Source: Phaeosaccion multiseriatum (taxonomy: Eukaryota; Protista; Ochrophyta, other classes). Taken from it: a stretch of DNA of 64,000 nt. A program made the position numbers and the translations under genes. The DNA lies in assembly GCA_965112735.1 (NCBI GenBank), contig OZ218951.1, positions 2,356,001 to 2,420,000 of the forward strand, written 5' to 3'. Below the pieces are notes generated by a model. It searched no databases. It was given only the letters and a program-made list of their open reading frames with translations, and was not told the origin of the DNA. This document shows, piece by piece, positions 1,565 through 14,439 of the stretch; position 1 is the stretch's first letter, and each line of letters opens with the position of its first letter.

Positions 1565-4500
1565 ATGGGCGGAGGTGGAGGGGGTAACGGCGGCAGTAAC
1601 AGAGACCGAGACCGCCACAGGAGAAGGGAGGGCGGTTGGGGGAACGAGGACATGAATGGCGAGAGCGGTAGGAAGCCTTCGTCCACGTCACGCAGCAAGG
1701 ACAGGGACTTCCGTGACTCGGGCAGCAGTGGGAGAGACAGAGACAGAGATCGAGACGGCTCCTCCTCCCGGAAGAGACGCAGGCCTCAGGATGAGGGAGG
1801 CAGCGGGAGGGATGGCCCCGGGTCGCCTGTTGCAGAGAAAGGGTGGACAGCATCCGGGACAGATGGAGGCGGGCGGTCTAGGATCGACGACAGCAGCAAC
1901 AACAGCAACAGCCACGGCAGCAGCACCTTTGATAACAACAGCAGCAAACGATCCAAGGGACCGCCCGTGGAGGGCCGGGAAGAGAACGCAACAAGCTTGG
2001 CGGATAAGTCGGAGTCGGGAGGGGACCGAGTGAGTACTTCTTCCTCGTCGACAGGCAAGGCAACGGCCAAGACAAACGGAAGCAGTGGCGGTGGCGCGGG
2101 GGGCGGTACCGCAAAGGCTGATGTACCACCAAAGAAGGCCGGAGATGATAGCCGCAAGAGCAGTGCTAATAGTATCCCGCAGCCTCGCGTGACGCACATT
2201 CATTCCGACCAGCTCAAGCCATCTGTAGACAGCTCTCGGGACGAGGTGCTCACGCACGACATTGGGGCCAACATCTGGGAGCTACGGAACCCCAAGGGTG
2301 ATGCAGAGATGATGAAGGCGGAGGTAGAGGCCGCCGAGGCTGCTCAACGAGCGAAGCTGGCGGAGGCAGAGGAGGAGAGGAGGAGGGAGAAGGAGAAGGA
2401 GAAGGTGGTGCTGGAGGCAGCGAACAAGGCAGAGCAGAAAGATGGCGCAACAGAGACAGTGGCGGGGGAGACGGGGAGAGGAGAGCCGGAGGAGGGAGTT
2501 GAGCAACGAGAAGGGCCGGAGAAGGAAGATGGAGTGCGTGGAGGCAAAGAGGAGAAGGGGGGGGGCGAGAAGGATCAAGGAGGAGAAGGGGCTGCCGCCA
2601 TGGAAGTGGAGAGCGAGGAGGTCCTAGGCAGCACGGCGACGGCCTCTGTATCACCAACTGCTGCTACTGGCATTGCCCAACAAGCGGAAGGGAAGGAGGA
2701 GGAGGAGGAGAATAGAAGCAAATCGGTAGCAGTAGAGGGTAGAGAGGAGGAGAAGGGGGGATCAACCACTGTTACGGGGCAGAAAGACGCAGCACCAGCA
2801 CCAGCACCAGCACCGCCAGCTGTTGGTGATGCAGTAGCAGCAGTAGGCGGCACCCCTCGGCCACCAAGCCCAACTTCCGCTGTCCGTGCCCCTGCCCCTC
2901 CTGCCCCGTCGGTAGTAGAGGCAAGCGTGCCCCGCGTCCGGCCTTTGAAGGAGCTTGCGCTGCCAGCCTCTCAGGCCTGGTTCGACCCTGACAGTGTCTC
3001 TTCCTTCGAGATGCGCATGTTGCCAGAGTTCTTCACAGGGCGGAGCACCTCCAAGACGCCAGAGACCTACTTGGTGATGCGAAACTTCATCGTGGGCTTA
3101 TGGGACAAGAAGCAGCAGGCGCAGTTTCAGGGAGCGGGCGGAGGAGGGGGGGCGGGGGCGGGGGCAGGGGCAGGCGGGTTTGCGAATGACAGAGGTGGAG
3201 GGGGTCGTGGTCCTGCTGCTGCTGCTCCTCCCGCCCCGCTTTTGAGCGCGACGGAGTGCCGGAGACAGCTCAGTGGAGACGCCGGGGCAGTGCTGCGGGT
3301 GCACGACTTTTTGGAGAAGTTTGGGGTCATCAATGTGAGTTTCAGTCCGGATCCCGCGGCGCATGCGGCTGCGAGTGCCGTTGACGATGCGGCGGAGGCC
3401 CGTGCTGCCGCTGCCTCTGCTGCTAGCGCGGCGGCTACTGCCCGTGCGGTCGCTGCTGCTGCTTCTACTGCTGCTGCTGCTGCTGCTGGGACAGGGGAGG
3501 AGCGAGACGCGAAAGAAGTTGCTGCTGCTGCGGAGGAGGCGCGAGCTACCGCCGACGCCGCTGCTTCCAAGGCAGCTGCCCTGGCTTCTGCCACTGCTGC
3601 TCGAGCCACGCAAGCCACCGCTGCGGTGGAGAGTGCTCGCGCTCGGGGAGTCCCCACCAGTGCCCCTACGGACATCGCTCATGCTGCTGCGGCAAGGAGA
3701 GCCACCAACGCCTCCTCGTTTGCGTTGCGGGGAAATCAGTTCTTTGCACTGCCGCCCGTAAAGGACGTGTGGGACACTCAGTGGAGCAGAGAAGCAGCCC
3801 CGGCGGGGGGGCGTGCTCAGGTGAATGGCGGCCGTCGCGGTGATGCTTCTTCTTCTGCGGCGGATAGCAGTGGATGGTCGGCCGATAAGGTGATGGTGAT
3901 GATCAAGGCGGTGGCGAAACACCGCGACGATTGGGGGGCGATTGCGGCCGAGGTGGGCATTGAGGGGGTGGACGCCGCAGCTTGTCTGCAGCGCTTTGTG
4001 CGGCTCTCTGTAGAGGAGATACTGGGGGAGGGCGCCGACATGCAAGGCTCGGTGTCTGTCGCCGTCCAGCAAGGAGGGGGAGGGAGGAGTAGTGGTGGTG
4101 GCAGTGGCAGTGGAAGTGGAGGATCTGGTGGAACGCCGTCCTCCAAGGCGTCCTCGTCGTCCTGTGCTAGGCGTTGTGCAACTACCGCTCACGCTGCGGT
4201 GGCTGCGGGTGGAGCAGGTGGCTCGTTTGTGGTGAAGGACGCCGTGATGCCGGCGCTAGGCCTGGCCTCGTCGCTTGTGCACCACTGTGCTCCGGAGATT
4301 CTCAAGGCGGCGTACTCTGCGGCACAGGATGCTTTGGGCGAACAAGTCAGGCTTCAGGGGTCGGAGTTCAGCACGATTCTTGAGGAGGAGCTCCGCAGGC
4401 TTGATGAACTGGACTGGCCTCAAGACGATGAGGAGGAAGGACAAGGAGGAGAGGAGGAGGAGGATGAGGAGGAGGAGGATGTCGCAATGGATGAAGAGAG

Positions 4501-6565
4501 TGACGTTAGTGAGGAGGAGGAGGAGGACGACGACGACGAGGAGGAGGACGACGAGGACGACGAAGAGGAGGAAGAGGGGGAGGAGAAGAAAGAGGCGGGT
4601 AAAAGCAATGGGGTGGAGGAGGATGGAGGTGTAGGTAACAAGGAGGCCCAGCCTCGTGCAGCAGAGGAGGAGGGAAAGAAAGAAAGAATTAGAGAGCCCC
4701 TCCCATCGGCAGCGGGCACTGGGACTGAGGAGCCGGTCGGCAAGGAGAAGACGTTGGGGGATGAGGAGGAGGCCGACAAGAAGGAAGGCCGTGAGGAGGA
4801 CCAACAGGCGGGAGCGAGTGCTCAGGAGAACAGACCCTCTGCAATGCACGCTCAAGACGATGCTGCTGTATCACCAACTGCTGCAGCTGCCGCCGCTACC
4901 GGTGATAAAGGGGAGAAGGGTCACAATGGCGCACCAGGCGACGAGGGCGAGGCACCGAGCAGTGGGGATAAGCAGAGCAGTGACTCGGAAGCGACAACGA
5001 CTCCCGAGAAGGTTTCCTCGGACGATACGGCTTCGAAGGAAGAGGACACAGGGGCCACAGACGAGGAGAAGGAGGCGGTTGACCGTAAAGAGGGGGGTGG
5101 TGAGGAGGGAGGTGGAGGCTCCGAAAAGGGGGCGGCAGACGCAGCAGAAGGAGGGGTGGGAGGGGGGCAAGCAGAAGAGGGGAGGAAAGAAGGATCAGCA
5201 GTAGCAGCAGCGGCATCAGCAGCATCGTCGGCAGAAGGATCAGAAGGAGCAAAAACGGTTCAGAAAGAGGGGGAAGCTGGGACTGACAAGTCGCCTTCTA
5301 CTGACGGAACGAAAAGCAGCAGCAGCAACAACAACAACAGCAGCAGTAGTAATAGTAGTAGTTGTAGTAGTAGCAGCAACAGCGGAGGAGGCCACAACGA
5401 GAGCGAGAAGCAAGAGCGACAAGAGAATGGTCCTGTCAAAGCGAAGAACGAAGAAGCAGGGTCATCGTCATCAGCTCCTCCTGTCTCTTCCACAGGCGGC
5501 GACGCGCCAGATGCAGAGGCTCTCAAGGAGGAAGGAGGTGGTGATGGGAAGAAGGGCACGGCGTCCACGGACAAGGGCAAGGCAGAAGATGCTGGGGCGG
5601 CAGTTGATGGAGCAACAGCAGCAGCAGTTGGTGGTACTGATGACATGGAGGTTGGCGACGACACTGGCAAGCAAGCTGGATCACCATCCGAAGAAGCAGC
5701 AGCAGTAGCAACAGCAGAGGACGGTGGGGAACAGGGCGGCAGCAGTAGCAGTAGCAACAGCAACAGCGACAACAAGAATAGCACTAGCGGCAAGGGCAAG
5801 GCCAAAGGCAAAGGCCCCAGCAAGAAGGAGAAGAGGCGTGCTGAGAAGGCCGCGAGGGCTCTGGCCAAGAGGGAGAGGGCCAAGGCCAAGGCTGCCGCAG
5901 CGGCGCGGAGGCGTAGGGAGGCGACTGCGGCGAGAAGGGCCAAGGCCCGAGCACAAGCAATGGCCAAGAAGCGTGTCATCATTTCGCAGGCGCTGGCGCA
6001 CGTGGCGTCTAGTGTGGGGGCTGCTCATGCCGCCGTGTTGTCTGTGTCTGCTTTGCAAGCAAAGGCACTGGCGGAGCAGGTGAGGGGATTCGGGAGAGGG
6101 AGGGGTGGGGGGAGGGGGGGGTGGTTTCTCGCTCCAGTCTTTTGTCCACAGGGCTGATGGATGATTTCGTCTGCCCTGCCCGCTTCTCTTTTGAATAGGA
6201 AACTCATAAATCATTGCTCTCTGTCTCTCTCGCTTTCGCTCCTTCCCCCCCACGCACACCCACGCACCCACACACACACACACACACATGCACACACACA
6301 TGCACACACACACATACACACACACACACACACATACACACACACTCACACACACACACACACACACACACAGGAGGAGAAGCGCTTGGAGCACATCGTA
6401 GGGGATCTCGTGGAGGCGCGAGTAAGACGCTTGGAGGGAAAGATGCACTACCTTGAAGAGTTAGAGAGCTTGTTGGAGAGGGAGAGGGAGGATCTGGAGT
6501 GCGAGAAGGTGGAGGCCCTGACGCAGCGGATACGGCACTCCATCGGGGCGCAGCATGGCATTTAG
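1565..6565 (+). CDS. SWI3: SWI/SNF complex subunit SWI3/SMARCC-like (SWIRM + SANT + C-terminal coiled coil); exons 1565-6079, 6374-6565
   Basis: SWIRM motifs AWFDPDSVSSFEMRMLPEFF..KTPETYLVMRNFIV and LSATECRRQLSGDAGAVLRVHDFLEKFGVIN. SANT-like WSADKVMVMIKAVAKHRDDWGAIAAEVG..CLQRFVRL. C-terminal AKALAEQ|EEKRLEHIV..LEGKMHYLEELESLLERER is joined by a phase-0 GT-AG intron at 6080-6373. Confidence 0.9.
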
Positions 6566-7269: not shown

Positions 7270-10200
7270 ATGGAGCGGCTAGGCGGGAGGGAGCGGCTTC
7301 CCGCCAGTGTCGAGATGGAGACAATCTTGAGCAGGCCGTGCTTGGCGAGCATGAGTCTGTTGGCTGTAGCTAGGAGCCCGGCCCTCCACAAGGCCGTGCA
7401 TGCCATGGAGCGAGAACGCCTCGGTCTTGAGCCTCTCCACCCAGACCGTCCCCCACTCGACAGCAGCAGCAGCAACAGCAAAAGCGACGGTACGAAAGCG
7501 AATATCAGGGGAGGTGATGTGAAGGCGAGGAGAGCGCTCCATCGCCTCCTCTGCCTGGCCGCGGACGATGCCATTCTCCCGACGCAGGGTCAAGCAAGGT
7601 CCGGAGGAGGGAAGGGAAAGGGTGCGGCTCAAGAAGCGTTCCTGAGTCTGGTGCAGCAGGTTGAGAACGGCGATGGTTTGAACCGAAATACTCCGAGCCG
7701 GAATCACATCTTGACCATGTGGGGTGGAGCGTCGCCGGCCCAATACGTCAAGGAGATTTGCGGTCTGGACTTGGAGGGAATGGCCCACCTGCTTGGTGAG
7801 TAGTCTTGCCCCACCTCCCGCCAACTGTCTATTCCTCCTACTCTAGCCCATGTGCAAGCCAAGCGCGGGCCTTCCTTTGCCCTCCTTTTGCTTCCATGCG
7901 AACGCTCCTGACTCACTATGGCATCGTCACCTCGTTACCACCGCATTTCCGCCCTCACCGTCTCAGGGCTTTGCTTCCATGAAACCTTCTTCTGCGAGTG
8001 TACCACTGGTGAGAAAGAGGTGCCCCCCAAGAGCAGCAGCAGCAGGAGCAGCAGCTGTCGTATGGGCAACGGAATTTCAGCGAAGGAGGGGGAGCATGCT
8101 CCCGTCGACGGCCGCTTAAAACCGGCTCCGTTAGTCGTGAAAACGAGGGGGGGAGGAGGATTGGGTGGTGCGGAGGGCCCAAGCTTGGGTAGAGGTACAC
8201 CACCTTCCACTCTGGCCCAAGCGTTGGAGAACTACTGGTATTCCAGGGGGGCCTGCCCTCGATGCCAGAAAGAGACCATGGTGGCAAGAACGGTCATGGA
8301 GCCTCTGCCAGATTGCTTCATTGTAAGCATCGACAGCGGCCCATCTAGTGGTGCTGTGGGTGGTGCTGTGGGTGGTGGTGGTGGTGGTGGAGGAGGAGGA
8401 GGAGGACGAGGAGGAGGACGAGGAGGAGGACGAGGCGGGGGGAAGAGTGGCGGGAAGAATAGCCAGTCCATGACTTCGTTCATGAGGAACCCCCCGCCCT
8501 TCAAGCTGGACTACGCGACTACATTACACTTGTACCAGCATCAGGATCAGCGCCAGCAGCCGCGAGAGGGGAAGGGGGAGGAGGAGGAGGAGGAGGAGGA
8601 GGAGGAGGAGGAGGAGGAGGAGGAGGAGCATGGTGGAGGGCAAGAGGTGTATATTACCGGCAACAACATCAGCAACAACACCAGCAACAACAACAACCGG
8701 GTGCAGGGGTACCAGCTTGTCGCCGCTGTATTTAGGGACGGAGAGGGCTACTGTACGGCCTTTGAAGGAGATGCAGGAAAGTGGTGGTTGGCGACGCGGG
8801 AGAAGGGGGTAGAGGACACGGCGCTTGACGACCTGAACTTGGCCAAATCGCCGGTGTTGGGCTTGTATCAGAAGGGGCGATACCTTAGTGGCAGTGGTGT
8901 TCGTAGTGGTGGTGATGGTAGTGGAGGAAGGGGGATCGGGCGGAGGAGTCCGGCGGAGGCAGGGAGGGGAAAAGTAGGTGCAGCAGCGGGAGCAGCCCCA
9001 GGAGCAGCAGCAGCAGTACGACATGGTGGCAGAGAAGCTCTGTCTATAATTGGGCCCTCTTCGAAGCGCAAGCCCATCTCCCCCCCCAGCGAGGATATAG
9101 TAGAGATCAGCAGCGACGAGGAGGGGGAAGAGGATGTAGGGCCACAAAGAGTGGGAGAGAAGGACAAGGGAAGTAGTGAGGTTTCACCTGAGCAGCTGAA
9201 GGGGAAGGAAGAGGGAGGCGAGAGAGGGGAGAGGGCGAACAAAGACAACGGGGCGGCATCAGGGACAGGGGGGGGAGAAGAGGCGACTGACAAGGCACCA
9301 CAGAAGGCGAAAGATGATGGGAGAGCTGCAGATGGAGGTAGGGAGGAGGAAGGTGACACAGAGAAGGACGAGATGGACATTGATGGCGGCAACGAGGAGG
9401 AAGACGAGGAGACTCAGGCGAAAGGCACGCAGAAGGATATCGAAGATGTTACTGAGGGATGCAAGAAGATGAGTTTTGGAGGCTCGTCTTCAGATTCTCT
9501 TCTTGGCACGATACTTACGGAGGAAGGCGGAGGAGGAGGAGGAGGAGGAGGAGGAGGAGGAGGAGGAGGAGGAGGAGGAGGAGGAGGAGGAGAAGAAGGG
9601 AAGGCCGAGAAGGAAGAGGAAGAGGAAGAGGAGGACGCAAAGAAGGATGCCAACGAGGAGGATGATGTGAACAGGGGGCAAGGGGGGCCTGGAGAGGGAG
9701 GAGAAGGGATTACGGTAGAGGAGGAGGAGGAGGAGGAGGAGGAGGAGGAGGAGGAGGGGGAGGAGGAGGAAGAGGAGGAGGAGGAGCAGAAGGAGCACGA
9801 GGAGGAGCAGGAGGAGGAGGAGCACGAGGAGCACGAGGAGCAGCAGCTGCAGCAGCAGCAGAAGGAGGAGGGGGAGCAGAAGGATGCAAAGGAAATGAAG
9901 GCGGCGGACAGGGATGAAGGGGTAGAAGGGAAGGCGGACGAGCATGTCAAGGGGGAAGAGAAGAAGAAGGGTGATCCCAGGAAGATTCTCACCAAGTTCA
10001 ATCTGAAGCCAACGACGTGCAAACAACAGAAGGTGAACGACAAACGGAAGACGGAAGACGGGGAGATCAAGACACCTTCAAGTGTCTCCGCTGATGAAGA
10101 TGCAGCCGATTCGCCCCCTCCCTTGCCAGTGCCACCAGCCATGTTAGTTGGAGCCGCACTAGTTGGTGGTACAAAGGCAGCATTGGCAGGAGAAGCAGGA

Positions 10201-10481
10201 GGAAGAGGAGGCGGAGGAGGAGGCGTTGCAAGAGAGCAAGGGGAGGGAGTGGATGCTTCTCCTTGCGCTTCCGCGGCAGCTGGGGACGGTAAAAGTGACA
10301 TGGGCGGGAACGACAAGGACAAGTACGACGCCTATAATGATGATGGTACTACTGATGAGGATGATGATAAAGAAGGGCGAGGAGGAGGAAGAGGACGAGG
10401 AAGAGGACGAGGAGGAGGAGGAGGAGGAGGAGGAGGAGGAGGAGGAGGAGGTGATGCTGCTACTGCTGCTGTTGATGATGG

Positions 10482-10513
<32 letters not shown>

Positions 10514-12367
10514 TGGAGATCGTGGAGCTCCACAGTGTGAGTAATGGGGGGCGTGGCGGCGGTGTGAAGGGCGGAGGAGGAGCATCGGCAGTGACGAGTA
10601 AGGGGGAAAGTGGTGGGAAGAAAAGCGAGGCCCTCACCAACATTTCCCGGAGCTACAATTCGAATGCGCAGGGGGGCGACACGAGTAGTGATGATGATGA
10701 CGATGAAGATGATGCAGACATGAAGGCGGCGAAAGAGGCATCTCTTGCCGAGCACCAGGCTAGGAGGGGTCTGTGCTACAAGAGGGCCCGGGGGACAGAA
10801 ACGAAGAAGACAGTGACAGGGGCAGAAGCAATGCTCGGTGGTGGTGGTGGTGGTGGTGGTGGTGGTGGTGCTGCGGCTGCTGGGAAGAAGAAAGGGGGAG
10901 GGCTGGGCGGTGAGATGGTAGTGGACTTAAGTGAGGACCTCGGTGAAGATGGCAACGGCGACCACCAAGAGGAGGCTGGAGGGGGTGGAGGAGGGGGGCG
11001 AGGAGGGGGGTGGAAGGCTCTTGCCGACGGGAAGCATGAGAAGATTGGGGCAGGAAACGGGATCGGCCGCGGCGGCCATTTTAAGAGGAAGGGCGGGAAG
11101 GTACAGGCAGGGGGAGGGGTAGAAAAGAAGAAGAGGAAAGTCAGCACCGAGGAGAAGGGGGGTACTGACGCCATGGATGAGGAGTACGAGTATTCGTCGG
11201 GTGGCACGGAAGACATTGACGACGACGATTTTGAGGAAGAAGACAATGGAGCACTAACATCTGCAGCAGCCAAGAGCAAGATACAGGCTCACAGCAGCAG
11301 CAGTGGCAAGAGGGGTCGGCCAGGGGGGGTGGGGGAGCCGGGTGGGGACGGGCAAGTAGGGTGGGGGACGAAGAGGAGGAAGCAGCTGAGACAGAGCACG
11401 TTAGATGGCTTGGGGGGCGTGGGGGGCGGGGCTTCTCCCTCCTCGAAGGGGAAAGGCTCTTGGGGAACGTTACCGCCAACTACTGCCGCTGGGAGAGCGG
11501 CCTTGGAGCGAGCTCAGCGGGCGGGGGTGGGTGCTGCTGTAGGAGGAGGAGGAGGAGGAGGAGGAGGAGGAGGGGGGGGGGGAGGAGGGGGGGGGGGAGC
11601 CGCGGCGCGCAAGAGGGGGAGAGGGGTCGTTGCGACTGGGAGAGGAGGAGGTGGCGACTCTCGTAGGCCTCTGGACGGGAACTTGACGACGAAGAACGGA
11701 AGGAAGGGCGCCGCATCAGACGAGGAAGAAGAAGGCCCTTGGAAGGACAAGTTTCACAGGGAGCCTGAGGAGGAGGAGGACGAGGAGGGCAGCAAACTCG
11801 CTCAATTCACCAAAATGTTCCCCACGGCTTGTTCGAACCCGGACCCGGACCCGGACTGGGCGAACGCTCCCGAGAGGAGTAGCGTCTCTTGTCTCCCGGG
11901 GGGCAGGGGGCTTGGTGACCGTATTCCCCGTACCATCACCACCACTAGCAGCTGTAGCAGCAGCAGCCGGAGCGGCGGTGGTGGCAGTAGTAGCGGCGTT
12001 GGGCGTCAGCGGGGCAGAGAAGTGGTTGTGGGGCACTCGGTGCTGCGTACGAAGGGGACCATTTCGACGGGCCACACAAGGAGGTCAAGTGGTAGAGCTG
12101 CGGAGAGAGTGACAGAAGTCGAAGATTACAGCGATGAAGAAAGCGCGTGGGAGGAGCAGCCAAGAGGGGGAGCGAACAGCAAGAGGAAGGCGAAGGCGAA
12201 GGGCGGCAGAAGCAGTGGCAGCAGCAAGAGGGGATCTGGCAGGGTAATGGCGGAGACCATTGATGACACTGACGATAGTGATGACGACTTCGAAGTTCAA
12301 GCAGGACCGAGCAGCATCACCGCCAGCGGACCGAGGACGAGAACGTGAGTTTCAGTACCCTGTCTGA

Positions 12368-12410
<43 letters not shown>

Positions 12411-14439
12411 TCCCCTTCTCGTTCTTTCCTTGCTTGTCCCACTTGCCGATGATCATCCTTCTAACGTCAATCCCCCCCCCCCCCCGTGTCTCCCCCTCTC
12501 CCTCCCCCCCTCCACCCCCCCTCCCCATCTCCCCCACTCCTTCCTCCCCTCCCCTCTCCTCTCTCCCTCCCCTTCCTGCCAGCCGCAGCGGCCTCAGGAG
12601 CGCAGCAGCAACCAAAGCCACCAACGCCGCCGCATCCATGCAAGCCTTCGACGTCATGGGCCTGCACATCTCTCCTGAGCTCATCGACAGAATCATCAGC
12701 GACGACGGGTGGCTGACCTCGCAGATCATTGACGCCCGTCTCATGCAGTTGGGCCGTCAGTACCCGAGGTGTCTCTTCCTCAACACCTCCTTCTTTGGGC
12801 TGCTTTGCCCGTCCTCGGACGCCCAAGGAAACTTTCAGGTGCGAAGGGGGGGGGGATCTCAAAATGTAGTCATGTACTTCGAAGTATACAGCAATAGCAG
12901 GAAGAGTGGTTGAGCCAGTGCTGTCGTCCTTATTGACATACTGCACATGTGTCAGTGCTTCTTCCCTCCCTCCCTTCTCGCCTCGCTCCTCTCCTTTGAT
13001 CCATCTCCGTTTCCCCTCCCCTCTCTCTCTCTCTCCCTCCCCCTCCCCCTATAAGGTGGACTACGAGAGAGTGAAGCGCTGGACCAAGAAGAAGCAGCTC
13101 CCCGGCGACTGCTGCACCATCTTTGACCTCCTCAAGGCATGTCACTTACTTGACTCTTGACTCAATTCTTTTTTAGTGTAGTACTAAGTACACTGCAGAC
13201 CAGGACCGGGCCTTCCTCCCCCCCAACGGAGAAACGCCACACCCAACTCTCTCCTTGTCACTCACTTTATCAAAAAGGCTTTTCTGCATAATTATTAATT
13301 ATTGGGTAGAAGGTCTCAGTAGACTGCAACAACTGCCTCACCTGCAACACAATTGAACTGCAACTACAACAGGTGTTCATCCCCATCAACGTGGCCAACA
13401 GCCACTGGGTGCTCGTGGTGGTGGACCTCGTCGCCAAGACCATCTCCTTCTTTGACTCCTTCGGTTCCTCAGGGCACAACTACGTCCAGGCCATTCAGGA
13501 GGTAAGTCAATGGGTAGATGGGATGGCAGTCGATGGGTGGTGTGTGTAGTGTGTGTGTTTGTGTGTGTATACTTCTTCCATCTTGGCCCTCACCATCCAC
13601 TGCCATCCCGGCCTTGCTTGCTCCCTCTCTTGCTCCCTCTCGCCGTCTGCCACATTACTTTCGCACCCCTCCCACCCCCCTCCCCTCCTCCACACACCCA
13701 CACCACGCACCCTCTCTCGCCCACCCATTCACCCACCCACTCATCCACCCACTCACCCACCCACTCACCCACCCACTCACCCACCCACTCACCCACCCAC
13801 TCACCCCACACGACCAACAACTAGTACATGGCATGCGAGATGTCCACCTGCGGCCACCAGGCCCAGGCCTCGCCTGCTGCGCTGAGCACCACCACCACCA
13901 GCGCCACCGCCACTGCCGCCCCCACCACAACCACTCTCGAGTGCCGGCCCAAGCCGCCTCGCAACGCGCCCCGTCAGCATAACAAGAGCGACTGTGGCGT
14001 GTTGGTGATACACGTGATCGAGGTGCTGGCAGGGGGTGAGCTCGAGTCGCTGCGCAGGTTATCGCAGAAGCAGATCACGGACCTGCGCTCCAACATGCTC
14101 ATACAGCTCAGCGGAGGAGGGGGAGGAGGGGGAGGAGGAGGAGGAGGAGGAGGAGGAGGAGGAGGAGGAGGGGGAGGAGGAGGAGGAGGAGGAGGAGGAG
14201 GAGGAGGAGGAGGAGGAGGAGGAGGAGGAGGAGGAGGAGGGGGGGAAGCAGTAGCAGCAGCAGGAGGAGGAAGCGGAGGAGAAGGAGGGGAAGGAGGAGA
14301 AGGAGAAGGCGGAGGAGGGGGCGGAAGCGTGGAGGTGACTGAGGTAACCGATGGAGCTGGTCCGAGTCTCAAGGGGAGCCCTGCCCAGGGAAGTCCCGCC
14401 AGGGGGAGCCCCGACGGGAGTGAGGAGGAGGTGTTGTAA
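7270..14439 (+). CDS. Large protein with N-terminal USP/peptidase C19-like domain (probably inactive), long disordered linker and C-terminal Ulp1/SENP peptidase C48 domain; exons 7270-7795, 7967-12344, 12583-12838, 13056-13136, 13373-13501, 13825-14439
   Basis: Ulp1 motifs: GWLTSQIID, FLNTSFF, VDYERVKRWTKK, VFIPINVANSHWVLVVVD, FFDS, PRQHNKSDCGVLV. USP-like boxes: RPCLASMSLLAVARSPAL, AQEAFLSLVQQV, FHETFFCEC, TLAQALENY..CPRC..LPDCFIVSI, YQLVAAVF..KWW..LGLYQK. All five junctions are phase-consistent; one uses a GC donor. Confidence 0.8.

Follow-up and report, generated by a model that had tools for sequence, protein, structure and literature searches.

Yeast Ulp1, SENP1 and SENP2 are C48 peptidases that carry out SUMO processing and deconjugation, and a non-catalytic N-terminal targeting region precedes their catalytic domain. 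SENP6, SENP7 and yeast Ulp2 are editors of poly-SUMO chains; these nuclear enzymes have a long disordered region with SUMO-interacting motifs (SIMs) ahead of the C48 domain. Among the ubiquitin-specific proteases (USPs, family C19), PAN2 (USP52) and USP39/Sad1 contain a USP-type domain without catalytic residues, and PAN2 combines this dead domain, within one chain, with a hydrolase of a different class that is active. Mixed SUMO-ubiquitin chains are the products of SUMO-targeted ubiquitin ligases, and we know of no single-chain enzyme that both reads and erases them. In this study, we analysed a stretch of 64,000 nt from the alga Phaeosaccion multiseriatum (contig OZ218951.1; G000:C2:2356001-2420000 in our numbering; hereafter the window), which belongs to a genome of 67 Mb in 22 contigs. 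We focused on one gene of this stretch, at positions 7270-14439 of the plus strand, in which a C48 domain follows a very long N-terminal region with USP-like features.

The gene belongs to the C48 family. Membership in C19 cannot be demonstrated, as Pfam does not recognise a USP domain in it and its His box contains no His. On balance, we favour with moderate confidence the reading that its six exons encode a nuclear SUMO protease of the Ulp1/SENP1-2 class, 1994 amino acids (aa) long, which bears an eroded, non-catalytic head derived from a USP. The C48 enzyme would remove SUMO from nuclear substrates, a KKKRKV motif would carry it into the nucleus, and three acid-flanked SIM-like motifs in a presumably disordered linker of about 1150 aa would recruit it to targets rich in SUMO, in the manner of SENP6/7 and Ulp2. 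About 480 aa at the N-terminus would be a heavily eroded USP derivative, with low-complexity runs at its loops, that does not perform deubiquitination. This USP-like module may serve as a non-catalytic binding or scaffold part (compare PAN2 and USP39), or it may be a relic that is turning into a disordered region. Whichever of the two applies, this gene is a candidate for encoding the principal SIM-guided deSUMOylase in the nucleus of the alga.

Results and Discussion

Gene model and the C48 domain

The predicted six-exon model holds. The coding sequence, read directly from the DNA, comprises 5985 nt, that is, 1994 codons and a stop (1995). All junctions are in phase, with two split codons, G/GG (Gly) and AC/C (Thr), and phase 0 at the remaining junctions. 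The donors are, in order, GTGAGT, GTGAGT, GTGCGA, GCATGT (a GC donor) and GTAAGT; the acceptors all end in AG, and the five introns are 171-323 nt long and pyrimidine-rich. The GC donor of exon 4 was chosen because it is the sole option that yields the gap-free IFDLLK/VFIPIN of the Ulp1 relatives. A codon-usage log-odds score, for which four USP reading frames without introns from this genome served as training set, was positive in the proposed frame alone for each exon (+0.18 per codon for exon 1; +0.22 for an exon of the SWI3-like gene upstream) and negative in every frame for the introns and for both flanking intergenic regions. The first-pass annotation of this DNA, made from the letters alone, had spliced six exons in phase into one open reading frame of about 2000 aa, and the number of codons, the junctions and the exon-wide codon bias bear this out.

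Nothing is missing from the C48 domain, which is of the Ulp1/SENP1-2 type. All similarity searches were run exon by exon. Against Pfam PF02902 (Peptidase_C48), exon 5 scored 36.9 bits (E 4.5e-9) and exon 6 scored 24.3 bits (E 3.1e-5), in both cases above the gathering cut-off of 20.7, and a genome-wide six-frame scan recovered the identical two matches. The catalytic set named by the first-pass annotation is present in full and in order: His at 13403-13405 (HW), Asp at 13454-13456 (FFDS), Gln at 13975-13977 and Cys at 13993-13995 (Q..N..DCG). Exons 3 and 4, both short, had no Pfam match by themselves; by eye they align motif for motif (WL..II, F.N..F, Y..V.RWT, IF) with the other Ulp1 genes of the genome. 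When exon 5 was compared with solved structures (PDB), yeast Ulp1 was the best match (E 3.4e-5), followed by SENP2, SENP1, SENP5 and bacterial Dub/deneddylases; neither SENP8 nor SENP6/7 was among these matches.

The gene thus has the C48 motif order and the His-Asp-Cys triad with Gln of Ulp1, SENP1 and SENP2, which are also the best solved matches of its His exon, and shares with them a non-catalytic N-terminal region. However, this region is here about 1650 aa long, consists mostly of Gly- and acid-rich low complexity and begins with the USP-like remnant. A Thr/Ala-rich insert between the Asp segment and the Gln-Cys segment and a run of about 50 Gly after the domain are further differences from these enzymes. 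The gene product is most likely a working SUMO-removing enzyme, as judged from its sequence. The sole pointer to cleavage of SUMO rather than of NEDD8 or ubiquitin is the set of PDB matches, in which Ulp1, SENP1/2/5 and bacterial Dub/deneddylases appear without SENP8. The coordinates of the features are collected in Table 1.

Table 1. Positions of the exons, domains and motifs of the gene within the window, and of similar C48 frames elsewhere in the genome.
Feature	Position	Strand	Remarks
Exon 1	7270-7795	+	175 codons + 1 base; opens at first in-frame ATG after a stop
Putative thumb part of USP-like module (exon 1)	7270-7795	+	predicted all-helical
"Cys-box-like" stretch	7333-7386	+	Cys codon 7339-7341
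AQEAFLSLVQQVE (AQEAFL stretch)	7624-7668	+	aligned to QQDAxEF helix of USPs
Intron 1	7796-7966	+	171 nt, GTGAGT...CAG; codon log-odds negative in all frames
Exon 2	7967-12344	+	putative head remnant, then linker
USP-like fingers/palm remnant (putative)	7967-8883	+	first ~305 residues of exon 2; broken by Ser-, Gly-, Glu- and Asn-rich runs
Block 1, LAQALENY...CPRC...LPDCFIVSI	8197-8331	+	exon-2 aa 77-121; aligned to USP stretch before and in KRF box
Block 2, YQLVAAVFRDG..YCTAF..WWLAT to LGLYQK	8710-8874	+	His-box-like strands; aa 248-274, given in extended form
Gly/acid-rich low-complexity linker	8899-12344	+	1148 aa, open in one frame only
SIM-like motif 1	9097-9135	+	IVEI then SSDEEGEED; 11 of 16 flanking residues Asp/Glu/Ser
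SIM-like motif 2	10483-10530	+	Asp run then VEIVEL
SIM-like motif 3	10918-10950	+	VVDL then SEDLGED
KKKRKV	11125-11142	+	classical monopartite nuclear localisation signal by sequence
Intron 2	12345-12582	+	238 nt, GTGAGT...CAG, 78% pyrimidine, (TG)18 run
Exon 3	12583-12838	+	start of C48 domain; GWLTSQII = WLND-type motif
Exon 4	13056-13136	+	YERVKRWTKK...IFD; GC-AG intron after it
Exon 5	13373-13501	+	carries catalytic His and Asp
Exon 6	13825-14439	+	oxyanion Gln and catalytic Cys, then ~50-residue Gly run, stop
Dispersed C48 frames (G000)	C2:1778972, C12:1534240, C12:2185548, C3:5130293, C13:2274716, C1:6836739		

One gene or two

The head and linker on the one hand and the C48 domain on the other are separated by intron 2, and the fusion of these parts into one gene is very probable. 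The TGA at 12346-12348 sits within the consensus donor GTGAGT, exactly where a reading frame of 1476 aa ends. The pyrimidine content is 56-68% in the four other introns and 78% in intron 2, as against 43-49% in the flanking intergenic DNA, and the codon log-odds of the gap are strongly negative in all three plus frames. The spacers to the neighbouring genes measure about 700 nt upstream, where a SWIRM/SWI3-like gene ends at 6565 (plus strand), and about 1200 nt downstream, where a methyltransferase gene lies from 15658 onwards (minus strand). Since these spacers are so much longer, a gap of 238 nt is too short to hold two sets of untranslated regions (UTRs) and a promoter.

It is also conceivable, and in our view quite unlikely, that two genes are present: the first would code for a protein with the USP-like and low-complexity parts and stop at the TGA at 12346, and the second for a short separate Ulp1 that begins at the ATG at 12638 (MQAFDVMGL...), a Met just ahead of the start of the C48 domain. 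The in-frame stop at 12346-12348 is consistent with such an arrangement, the agreement of phase would occur by luck in one case out of three, and the 12344/12583 junction is predicted from DNA alone. However, the gap at 12345-12582 resembles the other introns of the gene in length, pyrimidine content and splice consensus and is unlike the local intergenic DNA, and about 290 nt would be left for the 3'UTR, spacer, promoter and 5'UTR of the two genes, compared with 700-1200 nt between the neighbours. A start of the Ulp1 part at the ATG at 12368, in a frame that runs through the TG repeat, was rejected on its strongly negative codon log-odds.

The linker

The stretch between head and C48 domain had been described as an acidic, Gly-rich linker of more than 1000 aa, which agrees with the 1148 aa found. 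It consists of 22.5% Gly, 12.6% Glu and 8.6% Asp with only 11.8% hydrophobic residues, has few hydrophobic clusters and contains no Pfam domain. Three of these clusters, flanked by acidic residues or Ser, are the putative SIM-like motifs. They point in the first place to recruitment via SUMO, as is known for enzymes of this class. In this respect the gene would resemble SENP6, SENP7 and yeast Ulp2, in which SIMs lie in a long disordered region ahead of the C48 domain, although here the SIMs are recognised by sequence pattern only and the catalytic exon, unlike that of SENP6/7, matches Ulp1 and SENP1/2/5 in the PDB. The KKKRKV motif, which we take to act as a nuclear localisation signal on the strength of the established SV40-type motif, would agree with a nuclear enzyme of this sort. 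Neither the SIM-like motifs nor KKKRKV had been mentioned in the first-pass annotation.

The USP-like head

The first-pass annotation had recognised the box order of the USPs in the N-terminal part of the protein and had proposed that this part is catalytically dead. The boxes fared unequally in the comparison with a USP profile, which was built from 32 USP10-like proteins and the USPs of this genome. Two blocks of exon 2, the CPRC/LP..IV block (block 1) and the Y.LVA.V...W block (block 2), scored beyond all shuffled sequences, but the Cys box and the QDAQE box stayed at chance level. In hhalign, block 1 had E values of 0.009-0.013 and block 2 (aa 248-274), compared with the His box, of 0.002-0.02, and in each case 0 of 100 shuffles reached the score. 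The two blocks are collinear and lie at the positions expected from the profile, and as a pair they scored 46.2 against a shuffle maximum of 31.8 (0 of 200 shuffles). A separate hhalign run extended block 2 to the terminal LFY motif (VLGLYQK) with E 0.036 and a probability of 1.4%. An ungapped position-specific scoring matrix (PSSM) for Y.L..V..H.G gave 17.6 bits at YQLVAAVFRDG (p <= 0.001). When low-complexity sequence had been removed with an entropy filter, HMMER also reported two collinear domain matches at the same places, with a score reached by 8 of 1000 shuffles (P about 0.008). Since a single signal underlies all of these sequence tests, and more than one variant was run, we put their joint P in the order of 0.01.

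A second line of evidence came from a feature search of the ESM atlas, which is blind to family. For the exon-2 head, 24 of the 30 nearest clusters were UCH; the highest score was 0.93, and 169 features were shared. Comparable scores are obtained for 4-10% of shuffled proteins. Of the zinc ribbon CEC...CPRC that had been proposed, the second pair, a CxxC (CPRC), lies within block 1 and stands, but the first pair is a CxC and was aligned by no method. The low-complexity runs fall between the matched blocks, and USP domains tolerate insertions between their conserved blocks. Taken together, the resemblance to USPs is weak although reproducible, and a USP ancestry of residues 1-305 of exon 2 is probable, on a joint P of about 0.01 that is seconded by the atlas.

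The proposal that the His box and the W..FND motif are degenerate is correct. The sequences read FRDGEGYCTAF at 8731-8763 and WWLAT at 8782-8796 as had been written; there is no His anywhere in residues 222-310 of exon 2, the region of the His box, and the aligned position after the conserved Trp (WLATRE) is occupied by neither Asp nor Asn. Because no His is present in the His-box region, the module, if it is a USP domain at all, cannot have the activity of a canonical USP.

About 30 kb before the window, the genome contains a USP gene (G000:C2:2324578-2326771, minus strand, L043) with the Cys box GLNNLKSTDYVN, in which the catalytic Cys is replaced. We take this pattern to be that of the inactive splicing factor USP39/Sad1. 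This gene is a conserved dead USP of the genome that is still detected by Pfam, unlike the exon-2 head. For one USP of this genome, the best relative was a protein of the brown alga Pylaiella littoralis, with 42% identity.

Exon 1 is coding and is placed right for the thumb of a USP. Its all-helical model, obtained with AlphaFold2 (AF2) from the single sequence, fits a thumb at low confidence (predicted local distance difference test, pLDDT, 49.6), so that the homology is putative; one helix starts at Cys24 and another covers AQEAFL..VEN. The best match of this exon by hhalign and PSSM is AQEAFLSLVQQVE, which lies at the right position of the profile but has E values of 0.3-0.55 and is equalled by 48 of 100 shuffles (p about 0.13-0.5). 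The Cys-box-like stretch ranks second of 153 positions, and its PSSM score of -7.5 equals the shuffle mean. The atlas assigned exon 1 to no family (score 0.79), and Foldseek with the exon 1 model returned nothing at E <= 0.001, a model too poor for this to have meaning.

The following points weigh against the reading that we favour. Pfam UCH (PF00443) and UCH_1 (PF13423), which might have been expected on the N-terminus from the first-pass annotation, gave nothing at E <= 10 on any exon, and the 68 UCH matches from a six-frame scan of the genome all lie away from this locus. Exon 1 contains no significant USP feature. Our first USP hidden Markov model (HMM), made from USP10-like proteins, did no better on the untrimmed pieces than on shuffles, and the hhalign probabilities were low, at 1-16%. 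The P values of about 0.01 are somewhat optimistic, as several methods and ways of trimming were applied. The single-sequence AF2 model of residues 1-310 of exon 2 had a pLDDT of 34.6 and is unusable; piecewise modelling of the head therefore yielded no USP fold. AF2 was run without an alignment, since an alignment of true USPs would impose the fold and make the test circular. No orthologue or paralogue was found, and for this reason one can demonstrate neither that the module is under constraint nor that the fusion is conserved. A linker of this composition would contain about 1.7 SIM-like cores by chance, and the acidic flanks alone set the three motifs apart. The predicted nature of the 12344/12583 junction belongs here as well.

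The search for relatives was broad. HMMER with residues 1-310 of exon 2 against 1.84 billion representative proteins, a library without this genome that did not return the query protein itself, gave 12 matches; all of these lay on the Gly/Glu runs, and no Pfam family was assigned to any. No relative came from word-index protein searches with exon-2 residues 1-330, where low-complexity words swamped the search, or 243-305, and phmmer against PDB sequences found only Gly-linker artefacts. There was no paralogue in the genome itself and no relative in metagenome or viral contigs. A literature search found no paper on a USP-Ulp1 fusion, and no database protein was found with a USP-like module ahead of C48.

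These results raise the question of whether the head is derived from a USP. It might instead be the lineage-specific, fast-evolving N-terminus of an ordinary long Ulp1/SENP enzyme, in which the motifs arose by chance in about 300 non-repetitive residues. We consider this unlikely. The blank Pfam UCH scan, the untrimmed HMM, the low hhalign probabilities and the insignificant Cys and QDAQE boxes would all be explained in this way, and long disordered N-termini are usual in SENP/Ulp enzymes. The atlas recognition value of 2073 is also below 2300, a value reached by 91% of proteins of known family, and the 169 shared features fall just short of the guide value of 170. However, a chance match in the atlas would have needed to land, among thousands of families, on the one named beforehand. 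Chance would also have had to produce two blocks with the right order, profile positions and spacing, a pair that none of the 200 shuffles reached, and the PSSM match to Y.L..V..H.G at p <= 0.001.

If the head is indeed a dead USP, as we suppose, its closest analogues are PAN2 and USP39/Sad1. The domains of these proteins are recognised by Pfam and conserved across eukaryotes, whereas the head described here is below Pfam detection and has no orthologue that we could find. Moreover, the dead USP domain of PAN2 is packed against the hydrolase, but here the USP-like part is joined to the C48 domain via a linker of more than 1000 aa. A USP fold that is tied to SUMO and not to ubiquitin is that of USPL1, reported to be a USP-fold SUMO isopeptidase (PMC8983731). 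USPL1 is active and has its catalytic residues; in the present gene the USP-like part is without them and the SUMO chemistry would lie in a separate C48 domain.

It might further be proposed that the module, although dead as a USP, has kept an affinity for ubiquitin, or for SUMO as is the case with the USP fold of USPL1, and directs the Ulp1 domain to chains in which SUMO and ubiquitin are mixed. Four Cys kept at approximately the zinc-ribbon positions, the preserved hydrophobic cores of the palm strands and the presence of SIM-like motifs on the same polypeptide are compatible with this. On the other hand, low-complexity runs throughout the module and the lack of detectable relatives fit relaxed constraint equally well, and the first Cys pair is a CxC. 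We regard such binding and steering as improbable, and a role as ubiquitin-guided deSUMOylase, as the first-pass annotation had suggested, is speculation. It is a longer shot still that the protein is a single-chain reader-eraser of mixed SUMO-ubiquitin chains, in which the dead USP fold would read ubiquitin or SUMO and act together with three SIMs and an active Ulp1 domain. If the USP fold were kept for binding, the gene would represent a natural pseudo-deubiquitinase reused as the targeting part of a SUMO protease and would offer a handle on how cells dismantle mixed SUMO-ubiquitin signals. If the head is only a relic, it would show a catalytic domain dissolving into a disordered region after a gene fusion.

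Other observations

Intron 4, at 13137-13372, is a GC-AG intron within the C48 domain, with the donor AAG/GCATGT. About 50 Gly codons (GGA/GGG) at 14110-14250 follow directly after this domain, and five further runs of the kind are present in exon 2; the Gly-codon runs of both exons may be prone to length errors in the assembly. Two introns contain microsatellites, (TG)18 at 12368-12405 in intron 2 and about nine units of the CCCACCCACTCA type at 13700-13810 in intron 5, which give rise to long spurious reading frames in the list of open reading frames.

Elsewhere in the genome, six near-identical Ulp1/C48 reading frames (L012, L013 and L015-L018) are distributed over five contigs (Table 1), two of them with an in-frame TAA that is perhaps part of an intron. 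They look like a repeated element that carries a C48 protease, comparable to some plant transposons.

The upstream neighbour of the gene, at 1565-6565 of the plus strand, is a SWI3/SMARCC-like chromatin-remodeller gene (SWIRM, E 6e-16; SWIRM-assoc_1, E 4e-12). A CA repeat between its last two coding parts can be read as (TH)n and is probably intronic.

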